Of a DNA stretch of 64,000 nt, positions 77 through 8,326 are shown piece after piece (the first letter of the stretch is position 1; every line of letters begins with the position of its first letter). The notes beneath the pieces are model-generated. The model had not been told where the DNA came from. It worked only from the letters and a program-made list of their open reading frames with translations, and did no database searches. Source of the stretch: Adineta vaga. Lineage: Eukaryota > Animalia > Rotifera. The stretch covers positions 12,338,001 through 12,402,000 of the forward strand of contig CP075497.1 in NCBI GenBank assembly GCA_021613535.1. The letters are read 5' to 3'. Made by a program: the position numbers and the translations under genes.

Positions 77-348
77 ACTGAATTGAGCTATATACTCGAT
101 GACAAGTTCATTTAGATATACAATCTCTGATTTGAGTATAATTAAGTTTTCTTATTGATAATTCACACTGAAACAGCTTTCATGGTATAGTGTATTCAAA
201 TGCCTAAATGAATACTTTCATTTAATATTCAATACACCTACGTTTTATACTTTTTGATTCATTATCATATTTGTCAGGTTTTACAAAATTGAATTTCAAG
301 TATTTCTATGGAATCATTGACAAATGACACAGCATCTTCAAATCAACT
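77..348 (+). promoter_or_regulatory. Conserved upstream blocks of prepropeptide A
   Basis: ACTGAATTGAGC (77-88), TATAGTGTATT (186-196), CAATACACCTACGTTTTA (230-247), TTGACAAATGAC...AAATCAACT (317-348) all recur upstream of gene B. Confidence 0.6.
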
Positions 349-418
349 TCTCTTCTTTCTCCACATATATTTCTTCCTACTTTCCTATTAAATCGTTAGC
401 ATTATTATTCAAACAACG

Positions 419-742
419 ATGTCGAAACATATTGGTCTCTTCTGTATATTCATCGCACTAGTTTATCTCAATACTATTCTTATTCAAGTTTCCGCAACAA
501 CAATCGATCATCCTAGTCAACCCATTGAAAGTCTACTTGACCCTGCCAATATTGATCCAGACTATTTCATTGCCAATCAACAAATGAGTTATGATGACGA
601 TAGTGAAGCTGGCGTAGATGGTTATCGAAAAAGAAGTTTTAGAAAAAATTGGGCAAAACTATTTGAAAGATCTCAACCTCGATACACGATTGCATTTCCT
701 GCTCTTTTACGTTCACGTCGATGGATTGAAGAAGAACAATAG
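419..742 (+). CDS. Secreted prepropeptide A (putative neuropeptide or antimicrobial peptide precursor), single exon
   Basis: Hydrophobic N-terminal signal peptide, acidic spacer (DDDSE), RKR and RR basic sites flanking SFRKNWAKLFERSQPRYTIAFPALLRS; paralogous to 1408-1713; AATAAA downstream. Confidence 0.75.
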   Translation: MSKHIGLFCIFIALVYLNTILIQVSATTIDHPSQPIESLLDPANIDPDYFIANQQMSYDDDSEAGVDGYRKRSFRKNWAKLFERSQPRYTIAFPALLRSRRWIEEEQ

Positions 743-1122
743 GATCAATATGAATACATCAATAGATAAATTGAGATTTTGAATCATGTCCTTGATGAAT
801 TTAAACAAATAAATAATCGATTAAGATGATAAAGAAAGACATATACACAGAATGTGATGAATAAAATCGAAGTAGATTGATATTTTATATCTCAACATCT
901 TCTAGAACATTCAATCCCTTGATAACAGTTTTCTTAACGAAAATCTATAGTATAGTTTTTTCAGATACTGTTCCTATATTTTATTTCGTATTTGCTCTGG
1001 ATATTTGGAATTGTGTCTGTACTCTTGTATAATATAATCATTTTTATCAAGATATTATAATTTATAAGTATCTCGTAGGATTCTTTCCTACAGGCACATT
1101 TTATTTTAAAATTACAATATGA

Positions 1123-1293
1123 ACTGAATTGAGCGTAATACCTGACCCAATACGCCTACGTTTTAGAAATTCTTTTTTCTTCTTTCTTCTTTCTTCTTTA
1201 ACAAACTAATTAAAATAAAAAGTTTAATTATGTACTCTATAGTGTATTGTCCTTTTAACAGTTGACAGATGACGGAAATACTCAAAATCAACT
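1123..1293 (+). promoter_or_regulatory. Conserved upstream blocks of prepropeptide B
   Basis: ACTGAATTGAGC (1123-1134), CAATACGCCTACGTTTTA (1148-1165), TATAGTGTATT (1238-1248), TTGACAGATGAC...AAATCAACT (1262-1293). Confidence 0.6.
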
Positions 1294-1407
1294 CTTATTC
1301 ATTTTTTTCTCTTTTATCTCTTTCATTTCATATTATTCATTAGTATTTATATCATCCACCAGACTACACGTACATTTATTTATACTCTTATCGTATATAC
1401 TGAATTC

Positions 1408-1713
1408 ATGTATAAGCAAACTGGTTTTTATTTGATGGTCTTAATAGTAATATTCCTTTACTTAGCCAATTCGTTTTCTGCAACATCAACAAATGGATTA
1501 AAATTAGATCAAAAACGATCTTTTGCACTTTTATTTGGACGTTATGGTTTAGGTTCTGACACTATTTTACCTCATCGACCAGTTAATGGTAATGAAAATG
1601 ACAATATGGCGATTCCAAGAAGAAACGATATGAAAAAGAAATGGGCAAGATTCTTTCAAGGATCCCAATCACCTTATTCAATTGCATTTCCAGCACTTAT
1701 TCGTTCACGTTAA
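1408..1713 (+). CDS. Secreted prepropeptide B, paralogue of A, single exon
   Basis: Signal peptide, KR/RR/KKK sites, C-terminal WARFFQGSQSPYSIAFPALIRSR matching gene A; AATAAA near 1797. Confidence 0.75.
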   Translation: MYKQTGFYLMVLIVIFLYLANSFSATSTNGLKLDQKRSFALLFGRYGLGSDTILPHRPVNGNENDNMAIPRRNDMKKKWARFFQGSQSPYSIAFPALIRSR

Positions 1714-2084
1714 CACATCAAACCATAAACAATTGTATTATTTAAATGAGATAAATACTTAATTGATTTCTTTTGTTTCTCGAAGTATATAAATCAAATA
1801 AATGAATTCAATCACTGGACGAAAATATCTACAAATTTGATTTTTATTTCTTATTAAAAACAAGTATCGCTCACAATGAAATTGACTAAATAAATAGAAA
1901 CATACTATCTAATGAAAGAAAATCATCTTGAGAGTGTAGCTGAGAGTAAAGTAGAACACTAGCATCCTCATCCACACCGTACCATTATCTAGTGTACAAT
2001 AGATGTAACCCAGTTGATTATCTGTAATGTCCGTTGTAACTCGATGAGTACATAGCACTTAATTTATTGGACATTTCCGCAGAT

Positions 2085-2704: not shown

Positions 2705-4099
2705 ATGGATCAACCACCTAGTGATCGAATCATAAATGATATTCCATATCCTCGTGCTAGTTTATTAACAGAAGAGAAGTTATTTGATCCATCAACAGGT
2801 TTACCATCGATTAGTCGTTTAACAAAACATTTACGAGAAGAAGGTCATTTGGATGAACGATGTGCATTACGTCTTGTTGAACTTGCAAGAGGAATATTTG
2901 AACGTGAACCAAATATGTTATTAGTTCAACGACCAGTTACAATTGTTGCTGATGTTCATGGACAATTTTATGATTTATTAACAATCTTATCAGCTGGTGG
3001 TGATCCATCGAATACTCGATATTTATTCTTAGGTGATTATGTTGATCGAGGTCAATTTGAATGTGAATGTATTTTTCTTTTATTTGCACTTAAAATCAAA
3101 TATCCACAAAATATCAATTTACTTCGTGGAAATCATGAGACTCGTCAAATGACAAAATCATTTCAATTTAAATTAGAATGTGAAAAGAAATATCAATCGA
3201 AAACATTATACAATGCTTGTATGCATGCATTCGATGCATTACCTATTTGTGCATTAGTTGATTCACGTTTTCTATGTATGCATGCTGGAATATCACCTGA
3301 TATTCATACATTAGCAGATATTGAACAACTTGATCGATTTAAAGAAACTCCTAATTCAGGTTCATTATGTGATTTACTTTGGAGTGATCCAAGTGAAGAG
3401 TTCGATCAATTAAATGATCAAGAACCACCTTTTAAACCAAATAATGTTCGTGGTTGTTCGTATTTCTTCTCTTATTATGCATGTCGAGAATTTCTATTAC
3501 GAAATAAACTTTTATCAATTATTCGTGGACATGAAGTACAAAAAAATGGTGTAAGATTCTTTCATAAATCATCTCGTACAAATTTTCCGGTTCTTATTTC
3601 ACTTTTTTCGGCACCAAATTATTGTGATACATATAATAATGTTGCTGCGATATTAAAATTAAGTGAAAGTCAACAGTTATCTGTTGTACATATTGACGCA
3701 CATGGTCATCCATTTGTTTTACCAAATTATGAAAATGGTTTTCAATTTGGTGAACGATTTCTTGTTTATTATGCAACACAACTTCTTCTTTCATTGTTTA
3801 ATATGTATTCACCTGATGAATTAGCTGCTGATGATGGCCGTCGAGATAAAACAGCTGTCGAGTTGTTAAATAAAAAACGATTAATTGAAGCAATGGAAAA
3901 AGCGTATGGTGAAGTGAAAAAAACCAATAAAATTGCATTGAATTTACGTGGTTTAACACCATCTTATAAAGCTTATAAGGAATTATTAGCTCGACCAGAC
4001 ATTAAAGCATTAGTTCAAGAAGCGGAAAAGGGTCGAATTAAAGATTATGATCAAGCTCTTCAATTAGATCAGATATTCGAACGACGACCTTCGACTTAA
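2705..4099 (+). CDS. Calcineurin A-like (PP2B) Ser/Thr phosphatase catalytic subunit, divergent, intronless
   Basis: PPP motifs DVHGQ, GDYVDRG, LRGNHE, DLLWSDP, RGCSYFFSY, SAPNY; calcineurin-type tail (LRGLTP, LDQIFERRP); first in-frame ATG at 2705. Confidence 0.9.
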   Translation: MDQPPSDRIINDIPYPRASLLTEEKLFDPSTGLPSISRLTKHLREEGHLDERCALRLVELARGIFEREPNMLLVQRPVTIVADVHGQFYDLLTILSAGGDPSNTRYLFLGDYVDRGQFECECIFLLFALKIKYPQNINLLRGNHETRQMTKSFQFKLECEKKYQSKTLYNACMHAFDALPICALVDSRFLCMHAGISPDIHTLADIEQLDRFKETPNSGSLCDLLWSDPSEEFDQLNDQEPPFKPNNVRGCSYFFSYYACREFLLRNKLLSIIRGHEVQKNGVRFFHKSSRTNFPVLISLFSAPNYCDTYNNVAAILKLSESQQLSVVHIDAHGHPFVLPNYENGFQFGERFLVYYATQLLLSLFNMYSPDELAADDGRRDKTAVELLNKKRLIEAMEKAYGEVKKTNKIALNLRGLTPSYKAYKELLARPDIKALVQEAEKGRIKDYDQALQLDQIFERRPST

Positions 4100-6545: not shown

Positions 6546-8326
6546 TTAATCTAATTTTTTGTTTATCTTTAGAAAATAATAATCTAATTCTGATTGTTCA
6601 ACAGCACTTGGTGCTTCCGAAATAAGATCTTTTCCTGAACTTGTTTTCGGAAAAGGTATTACATCTCGAATATGTTCTGTTTCTAAAACTAAAGCAAGAA
6701 GACGATCTAATCCTAGAGCAATACCACCATGTGGTGGTGCACCATATTGTAATGCTTTTAAAAGATGTTCTAAATGTTCAATTGGTAAATGAAGAATATC
6801 ATTTAGAATAAAACGTTGTAATTTCGAATCATATATTCTAATTGAACCACCACCAACTTCAAAACCATTTAAAACAAGATCATAATGTTGACCAATAATA
6901 CGTGGCCAATCTTTTTTCGATGATAATAATGATAAATGTTCATCAATTGGTGCAGTAAATGGATGATGAGTTGATTCCAGTTGTGTTCGATCATTTGCCA
7001 TCGGTGTAAATAAGGGAAAATCGGTAATCCAGAGGAAATTCCATTGACGTTTTTTTCTTAATTCAATTTTATATTCATTTTCAAGAAAATCAGCCAGTTT
7101 TAAACGAAAATTTCCCATTTTGATCAAATCTTCATCTTCATTTTTTGTTCTATTCATTGAAAATATCTTCTGTATTTCATCGTATTGAATATCAACATCA
7201 TCTTCAATTAAATTCTTGACATTATTCAAAGAAATTGGACTGGTAATAGAAAATTTATCAGATGTATGTTCAATTTCTAAACCAAAACGAGTATCTGGTT
7301 TATCTGTTCCATAACGTGACATGGATTCTGCATAAGTTAAACGAGGAAATGGAGTATTTTGAAGTTGATCAGGCCAACAATACGATAAAAGTTCTTCGAT
7401 TAGAGAGAAAATGTTTTCTCGTGAAACAAAACTTAATTCTAAATCAATTTGAGTAAATTCAGGTTGACGATCTCGACGCCCTGAAATCAAATATAAATTT
7501 CTTATGGAAAATTTTTTCTCAATAAACCTGTTTCATCTCGAAAACATTTCGCAATTTGAAAATATCGATCAAAACCTCCCATCATTAATAATTGTTTGAA
7601 TTGTTGTGGACTTTGTGTTAATGAATAGAATAATCCACCACCTTGAGAATGTGTTGGAACTAAGAATTCTCTTGCACCACCAGGTGTACGACGAAATAGT
7701 AATGGAGTTTCTATATCAACAAATGAATGTTTTAAGAAAAACTCACGAACTTTAGCAATGAATAATGAACGAAAACGAATACGTTCTTGCATTATATCAC
7801 GACGGAAATCTAAATAACGATAAATTAAACGTGTTTTCTCATCAGATTCATGATATTTTGATAGATCAATTGGAATTTGCGGTAAACACGAATTAATTAC
7901 TTGAAAATCGGTTACATGAATCTAAAAATGACTTCTTCTATTTTCTTTTTCTAAATTATTCGAACATACTTCAAGATCACCTAATGACATATCGGTATTA
8001 ATATCTTTTTCAGGTCGTTTTTTTAATACTCCTTTGATATGTACACAAGATTCTACAGATGTTTGTTTTAATATTTGACGTTCTTGTTTCATTGTTGATG
8101 GAAGAATAAATTGAATTAATCCCGAATGATCACGAAGAACACCAAATGAGTTCAAACGACGATATTGTAACCAACCATGAAGAGATACTGAAGTATCAAT
8201 TAGGTTTTTATTCGATAAATCAGATACTAAATGTTGTCGATAAGAATATTTTGTTGAATATGATGAAGATAATCGACAACAATGACGTACTGTTAAAGAA
8301 AACTGTTTTAAAAGATTAGAAAACAT
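6546..8326 (-). CDS. DARS2: Mitochondrial aspartyl-tRNA synthetase; exons about 8326-7970, 7921-7528, 7480-6546
   Basis: Transit-peptide-like N-terminus, OB fold (LRDHSGLIQ), GAREFLVP, QSPQQFKQLLM, CFRDE..RQPEFTQIDLE, HHPFTAP, GAPPHGGIALGLDRL; 48- and 47-bp GT-AG introns restore the frame. Confidence 0.95.

Follow-up and report, generated by a model that had tools for sequence, protein, structure and literature searches.

Small secretory-type precursors of a bdelloid gene family share one strongly conserved, predicted non-amidated peptide

Genomic location and gene copies

The window analysed here is the whole 64,000-nucleotide stretch from position 12,338,001 to 12,402,000 of contig CP075497.1 of the bdelloid rotifer Adineta vaga (G000:C6:12338001-12402000, the genome G000 comprising 100.8 Mb on six contigs), and has a G+C content of about 30%. 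Near its start are two small genes, here called copy 1 and copy 2, which encode what appear to be precursors of a secreted peptide and are the subject of this report. A first-pass annotation, made from the letters of the window, had described them as a tandem pair of intronless genes of about 100 codons each, and they are indeed two separate open reading frames (ORFs), at 419..742 and 1408..1713. The tandem arrangement stands, with the correction that it is a triplet and that a further copy lies elsewhere. A six-frame search of the whole genome recovered four paralogues: copy 0 (C6:12337560-12337868, 103 amino acids (aa), about 550 bp upstream of the window) forms the tandem triplet on C6 together with copies 1 and 2, and copy 3 is dispersed on another chromosome (C3:4340388-4340693, 102 aa). 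The features of the two genes within the window are as follows.

419..742, plus strand: copy-1 coding sequence (107 aa, stop included)
419..496, plus strand: copy-1 predicted signal peptide (aa 1-26, ending ..QVSA before TT)
626..649, plus strand: copy-1 predicted basic processing linker RKR-SF-RK-N (aa 70-77)
650..718, plus strand: copy-1 conserved peptide block WAKLFERSQPRYTIAFPALLRSR (aa 78-100)
716..739, plus strand: copy-1 RR site (aa 100-101) and acidic C-terminal tail WIEEEQ
1408..1713, plus strand: copy-2 coding sequence (101 aa, stop included)
1408..1482, plus strand: copy-2 predicted signal peptide (aa 1-25, ending ..NSFSA before TS)
1618..1641, plus strand: copy-2 predicted basic processing linker RR-NDM-KKK (aa 71-78)
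1642..1710, plus strand: copy-2 conserved peptide block WARFFQGSQSPYSIAFPALIRSR (aa 79-101, stop codon directly after)

All four copies end in a common C-terminal pattern, (K/R)KWA(K/R)(F/L)...Y-x-IAFPAL(I/L)R(S/T)R. Between copies 1 and 2, BLASTP gives an expectation value (E) of 2e-11 at 25% identity, with the similarity mostly in the C-terminal 23 residues, as had been proposed. Both have a spacer with many acidic residues and Asn. The motif KR-SF, which the annotation had listed as a second shared element, is a coincidence: it occupies aa 71-74 of copy 1, next to the peptide, and aa 36-39 of copy 2, in the N-terminal part, and was rejected as a homologous feature because of these different positions.

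Transcripts

Contigs from four public runs were placed on a 3.3-kb stretch spanning copies 0 to 2 (L001; window coordinates equal L001 coordinates minus 1082). Runs X1, X2 and X8, from three studies, are of RNA type, and X10 served as a DNA control. X10 behaves as genomic DNA and covers 30 of 30 bins, intergenic bins included. The three RNA-type runs cover the gene units only, forming three separate islands with the intergenic bins empty. The island of copy 0 extends over L001 580-1053; the other two, with their polyadenylation signals, lie inside the window.

356..880, plus strand: copy-1 mRNA as the extent of RNA-type contigs (L001 1438-1962), poly(A) after 880
860..865, plus strand: AATAAA polyadenylation signal of copy 1, 15 nt before the poly(A) site
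1401..1835, plus strand: copy-2 mRNA as the extent of RNA-type contigs (L001 2483-2917), poly(A) after 1835
1797..1802, plus strand: AATAAA polyadenylation signal of copy 2 (15-33 nt upstream of the poly(A) sites in copies 1 and 2)

Each of the three islands ends in a non-templated run of A. For copy 1, X1 shows 21 loose A beyond L001 1962; for copy 2, the loose end beyond L001 2917 consists of 19 A. The RNA-type contigs of copies 0 to 2 are colinear with the genome and contain no joints, and these copies are therefore intronless. Copies 0, 1 and 2 are thus expressed as separate, unspliced and polyadenylated mRNAs, and transcripts of the two genes that the annotation had predicted occur in runs of three studies. 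The copy-0 contig of X8 starts with a non-genomic sequence of 25 nt, which we take to be a cDNA-synthesis adaptor; L001 580 is therefore probably the true 5' end of that transcript.

In X8, copy 1 also carries an in-frame 9-nt insertion, CAACAACAA, at window position 494 (L001 1576) in the predicted signal-cleavage region. It lies in a repeat that codes for Thr and represents a length polymorphism between alleles or strains.

Family members and absence of known relatives

A word search with copy 2 alone found two relatives only, both in Adineta ricciae, one of which (P0002) is the orthologue of copy 2 and 65% identical to it. A profile built from six sequences recovered 98 proteins (E between 1e-45 and 8e-9), nearly all with lengths of 80-125 aa. 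The named sources are A. vaga, A. ricciae, A. steineri, Rotaria socialis, R. magnacalcarata, Rotaria sp. Silwood1 and Rotaria sp. Silwood2; the remaining members come from metagenomes and run assemblies. In the databases the 98 are annotated as hypothetical, as uncharacterised or, for some in UniProt, as 'Secreted protein'.

The claim of novelty depends on the absence of relatives, and an exhaustive hidden Markov model (HMM) search was therefore run with a profile of 55 sequences against 1.84 billion cluster representatives. At its limit of E = 0.001 it returned 34 clusters, all of them family members or fragments, and no protein outside the family. No consistent Pfam family was obtained for the 55 members, copies 1 and 2 having been scanned as well, and what appeared at E up to 10 was scattered noise. 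A profile search of the chain sequences in the PDB gave 0 matches at E up to 10. Searching publications for the motif yielded only a chance hexamer, AFPALI, in the frog antimicrobial peptide ranalexin-1Ca (PMC9607450), and in the literature on rotifer or Adineta neuropeptides we found no description of this precursor family. The annotation had been unable to match the peptide to any named family, and none of these searches gave a real match either. As far as the databases show, the precursor family appears to be undescribed and confined to bdelloid rotifers.

One contig from run SRR10663368 (Logan contig L009, 2371 bp, 58% GC as against about 30% in the A. vaga window) has two family members in tandem, one copy-0-like and one copy-1-like, beside a C2H2 zinc-finger gene.

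Precursor architecture and the conserved peptide

The 98 proteins were aligned on their invariant core for counting residues by position. They share one order of parts: a hydrophobic N-terminus, a spacer of variable sequence with many D, E and N residues, a K-R pair, two residues, a K-K-K run, the peptide, then R or a stop codon, and an optional tail. The peptide has the consensus WAKFYQGAQSPYTIAFPALIR[ST]. K-R stands at positions -21/-20 in 81 of the 98 proteins and is followed by two variable residues, commonly Q-L. The three positions of K-K-K are kept in 60, 75 (-16) and 89 (-15) of the 98. The peptide opens with W in 84 of 98, followed by A-K-F-(F/Y/H)-Q-G-(S/A)-Q-S-P-Y-T. Its core, I-A-F-P-A-L, is nearly invariant: I, A, F, P and L are found in 98/98, across Adineta, Rotaria and the metagenomes, and the second A in 97/98. 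After the core come I (91/98), R (97/98), T or S (97/98) and R (98/98); R-[S/T]-R at +6 to +8 is present in at least 97 of the 98. Conservation of the motif in related species, which the annotation had anticipated, is therefore extensive. Mean entropy per column amounts to 0.88 bits for the peptide, compared with 2.30 for the signal region, 2.42 for the pro-region and 2.12 for the tail; sequence conservation is concentrated in the predicted mature peptide.

Convertase-type basic sites are conserved on both flanks of the peptide. On the C-terminal side, R-[S/T]-R is followed by another R in 87 of 98 proteins and by a stop codon in 8. The tail is absent or short, variable and often W-I-E-Q-E-Q. 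Some members terminate with R-[S/T]-R and others with R-R, and in the rest unrelated tails follow, reaching lengths of about 20 residues. With eight members having their stop codon immediately behind R-[S/T]-R, the tail is dispensable and the site is not. Such variable ends beside a constant R-[S/T]-R(R) are what would be expected if the functional C-terminus were cut there by an enzyme of the furin or proprotein convertase type and then trimmed by a carboxypeptidase; R-x-R-R is the furin-type consensus. The residue before RR is T in 57 members, S in 40 and G in one (P0054). With no Gly before the basic site in 97/98, the product would be non-amidated. This agrees with the remark in the annotation that the peptide lacks an amidation Gly; copies 1 and 2 have no Gly before their terminal basic residues. 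On the N-terminal side, the residue after K-R is Gln in 61 of 98 proteins, which could give a longer peptide with an N-terminal pyroglutamate; A. vaga has R, S, N or D here in its four copies.

The N-terminus is signal-peptide-like in all four A. vaga copies, with a hydrophobic core of at least 12 residues within aa 4-20 and a mean Kyte-Doolittle hydropathy of 2.0-3.2. The most hydrophobic 12-mer is aa 5-16 in copy 1 (mean 2.79) and aa 9-20 in copy 2 (mean 3.15). Small residues occupy -1 and -3 after the hydrophobic core in copies 1 to 3, and copy 0 has no such clear site. The N-terminus is a candidate cleavable signal peptide. The AlphaFold2 model, based on an alignment of 55 sequences, has a mean predicted local distance difference test score of 60, and its only confident part is a helix over aa 2-25. 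It places a weak helix over KKKWARFFQG (aa 72-84), the first third of the block, and coil in the remainder, residues beyond 84 included; the model gives no sign of a globular fold.

Selection and phylogeny

Among the four A. vaga copies, the proportion of synonymous differences in the 23-codon block (pS) is 0.44-0.60, versus 0.11-0.30 for non-synonymous differences (pN). The runs contain 13 coding differences from the reference, allelic or between strains, of which 10 are synonymous. All three replacements are in the signal or pro-region of copy 0. Two changes fall inside the peptide block, at 1665 and 1680 in copy 2, and both are synonymous. The peptide is under purifying selection.

A maximum-likelihood tree of 29 members contains four orthogroups, each with one A. 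vaga copy and an A. ricciae member. The A. steineri members fall within the copy-1 and copy-3 orthogroups, and the copy-3 orthogroup is sister to a Rotaria clade with support of 100/99. The tree suggests that the four paralogues are ancient duplicates. The surroundings of the cluster are conserved as well. In A. ricciae, three members are followed by a Metallophos (calcineurin-like) gene and a class-II tRNA synthetase (tRNA-synt_2) gene, the neighbours found in the window at 2708-4096 and 6549-7490, and on a metagenome contig two members are followed by the same tRNA-synt_2 gene. The order within the tandem array differs between the species, being copy1-like, copy0-like, copy2-like in A. ricciae (L015 4205-6348) and copy 0, copy 1, copy 2 in A. 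vaga (G000:C6:12337560-12339713). A second copy1-like gene of A. ricciae (P0082) lies on a separate contig.

The copy on C3 was considered as a whole-genome-duplication partner (ohnologue) of the C6 cluster, but such a relation was not demonstrable, as the two loci share no flanking genes. When ORFs from 30 kb around the C3 copy were compared with 40 kb around the C6 cluster, the peptide genes were the only match, and the calcineurin-like neighbour of the cluster has no partner near the C3 locus. The C3 copy is therefore called a dispersed paralogue.

Proposed processing and function

The genes are transcribed, polyadenylated and intronless, and the peptide and its basic sites are conserved under purifying selection. 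We consider it fairly probable that they encode small secreted, prohormone- or neuropeptide-like precursors of a bdelloid-specific family, each releasing one non-amidated peptide. The signal peptide would direct the product of about 100 aa to the secretory pathway. There, kexin-type proprotein convertases would cut at KR and then at KKK on the N-terminal side and at R-[S/T]-R-R on the C-terminal side, where in some copies the stop codon stands in for the site, and a carboxypeptidase would trim the leftover basic residues. The product would be a single non-amidated peptide of about 22 residues, W-A-K-F-x-Q-G-x-Q-S-P-Y-T-I-A-F-P-A-L-I-R-[S/T]; cleavage at KR only would give a 27-residue form that begins with Gln in most family members. 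The released peptide would act as the ligand of a receptor, and the four paralogues (the tandem triplet and the dispersed copy, all ancient duplicates) would each supply a slightly different version of it. Enzymes of the required kind are present: the A. vaga genome has 11 matches above cut-off to P_proprotein (PF01483), and paralogues of PCSK1, PCSK2 and furin2 have been reported from this species (bioRxiv 10.1101/802215).

The closest parallel in layout is with single-peptide precursors of the PDF/DH31 type. These are likewise of about 100 aa, with a signal peptide (predicted in the bdelloid proteins), a variable spacer, dibasic sites, one conserved C-terminal peptide and an optional tail; conservation is confined to the peptide; and they are the nearest by protein language model. 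They differ in showing no sequence or profile similarity to the family and in having a different peptide sequence, and the bdelloid precursors have no amidation Gly. In the ESM Atlas the language-model neighbours are mostly precursors of DH31, PDH, UTS2B, NPFF, CCK, NPF and galanin, with scores of 0.86-0.93. As a lead only, they may support the class of peptide hormones and no particular family.

Several points weigh against this interpretation. The language-model scores just given are within the range that shuffled proteins sometimes reach. The amidation Gly that most protostome neuropeptides carry is present in 1 of 98 members. The copy-2 contigs begin 7 nt before the ATG, so the 5' end of this transcript is probably incomplete. 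Finally, cleavage, the ends of the peptide, its secretion, the cell type that produces it, its receptor and its signalling role are what we infer.

More tentatively, and with slightly less than even confidence, we propose that these genes represent a peptide signalling system that arose in bdelloids, or is now recognisable only in them, with four genes, non-amidated ligand variants of 22-27 residues that share the core SPYTIAFPALIR, and no counterpart in other animals. If so, the peptide would control something basic to bdelloid physiology, for example feeding or ciliary activity, reproduction or dormancy; such a basic role would follow from its near invariance across Adinetidae and Philodinidae.

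Alternative explanations

The alternative that survives best, itself unlikely, is that the product stays unprocessed as a small protein, either secreted or associated with a membrane, with the C-terminal block, basic runs included, serving as a binding or sorting motif. Cleavage is predicted here from the sites themselves, the basic runs beside the block are conserved along with it, and the weak AlphaFold2 helix runs across KKKWARFFQG. On the other hand, the protein has no confident fold and its middle part is disordered and poorly conserved. The variable ends after the basic site are a prediction of the cleavage-site reading and are hard to square with a C-terminal structural motif, and the R-x-R-R site fits the furin-type consensus.

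Slightly less likely again is an antimicrobial or defence precursor, in which a cationic C-terminal peptide, neutralised by an acidic pro-region, would be released to kill microbes. The order of parts seen here, with a predicted signal peptide followed by an acidic spacer, a KR site and a basic peptide at the C-terminus, fits this and resembles the precursors of frog-skin peptides of the dermaseptin/ranalexin type, which also supply the chance AFPALI match. The annotation had raised the same idea from an acidic spacer and a cationic amphipathic peptide. The spacer is indeed acidic; the peptide is weakly cationic and weakly amphipathic. Its net charge is +1 to +3, with one or two Pro and up to two Gly, and its helical hydrophobic moment is 0.30-0.44, somewhat above the 0.18-0.24 of shuffled controls. 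The observed moment is reached by 5-7% of shuffles for three copies and the consensus, and by 21% for copy 3. The charge is low, one or two Pro and a Gly would break a helix, and the model is coil after residue 84. The ranalexin match amounts to six residues in an unrelated, Cys-containing peptide, and the bdelloid peptide has no Cys 'Rana box'. In frog-skin peptide and cathelicidin precursors the prepro regions are conserved and the mature peptides hypervariable. The bdelloid family is the opposite, with a mature block nearly invariant across genera and a variable prepro region, and the allelic changes in the peptide are all synonymous. Because the mature block is conserved and the prepro region variable, signalling is favoured over antimicrobial defence. 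Of the annotation's proposal of an undescribed signalling or defence system, the first adjective appears to hold, and the conservation pattern points to the signalling half.

It is very unlikely that the family is a strongly diverged member of a named neuropeptide family such as CAPA/pyrokinin/sCAP or a neuropeptide B/W (NPB/NPW)-like one. The resemblances are short motifs, and the language-model neighbours are peptide-hormone precursors of several unrelated families. Known CAPA/sCAP cores read ...Y-L-A-F-P-R-M-amide and ...A-F-P-R-V-amide, to which the short Y-x-(x)-A-F-P of the bdelloid peptide is similar. Here, however, A-F-P is followed by A-L-I-R-[S/T]-R-R, and the C-terminal P-R-x-Gly of a PRX-amide is absent; the bdelloid precursors hold one peptide each, whereas those of the CAPA group hold several. 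The vertebrate NPB and NPW are non-amidated peptides of about 23 residues that start with W-x-K, are followed by RR and have their Trp directly after the signal peptide. The bdelloid peptide shares the W-x-K start, the length, the lack of amidation and the RR. Its Trp (aa 78-79), in contrast, is separated from the predicted signal-peptide cleavage site by a pro-region of about 50 residues, and no other similarity can be aligned. Among the 55 members scanned, no Pfam family rises beyond noise at E up to 10, the neuropeptide families and NPBW included, and the exhaustive HMM search gives nothing outside the family. CAPA has, moreover, been reported by NP-HMMer among the families newly found in rotifers (bioRxiv 10.1101/2024.07.20.604414).

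Chance or non-functional ORFs with an artefactual similarity are effectively refuted by the transcription and polyadenylation of the genes, the 98 homologues with E down to 1e-45, the synonymous excess and the conserved synteny.

Significance for rotifer peptide signalling

If the genes do encode precursors of a secreted signalling peptide, they add to a field that is almost unexplored in rotifers. According to the NP-HMMer preprint, an AKH-like precursor was the sole rotifer one known before; that study applied models of known families, already known from arthropods, to four rotifer proteomes, including those of A. ricciae and R. socialis (10.1101/2024.07.20.604414). The present family is a concrete candidate for a lineage-specific ligand. 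Besides being expressed, its genes are under strong constraint; the peptide can be synthesised at little cost, and comparisons can be made among four paralogues. The family could serve as a starting point for receptor deorphanisation in Gnathifera and as a marker for bdelloid peptidergic or secretory cells. Lineage-restricted orphan peptide families are common in animals, and the result therefore extends knowledge and overturns nothing.

Upstream element and neighbouring genes

An alignment of the four upstream regions revealed a short element that may be a shared cis-regulatory element. Its two occurrences in the window are as follows.

317..328, plus strand: upstream 12-mer TTGACAnATGAC, candidate cis-regulatory element, 102 nt 5' of the copy-1 ATG
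1262..1273, plus strand: upstream 12-mer TTGACAGATGAC, 146 nt 5' of the copy-2 ATG

The element also occurs 5' of copy 0 (L006, about 1363-1375). The 12-mer is kept 100-150 nt 5' of the ATG in all three tandem copies, where the flanking promoter sequence has diverged, and the C3 copy has only a degenerate version upstream. The pattern occurs twice in the 64-kb window, each time 5' of one of these genes; about 65 occurrences per 100 Mb would be expected by chance, as estimated from base composition.

The Metallophos gene (2708-4096, plus strand), directly downstream of the cluster, is of the PP2B type, encodes 463 aa and is apparently intronless. It has many paralogues in the genome, among them a run of three on C5 (6145978-6151365) with spacings of about 2.4 kb. 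Near the C3 paralogue of the peptide genes, at a distance of about 600 bp, is an intronless ORF of 266 aa on the minus strand of that locus (L007:85-882, about G000:C3:4338972-4339769), with a Cys-rich N-terminal part and an Amidase_2 (N-acetylmuramoyl-L-alanine amidase) domain (E = 9e-16). Horizontal acquisition of genes is common in bdelloids, and this ORF could encode a peptidoglycan-recognition protein or a horizontally acquired bacterial-type amidase.

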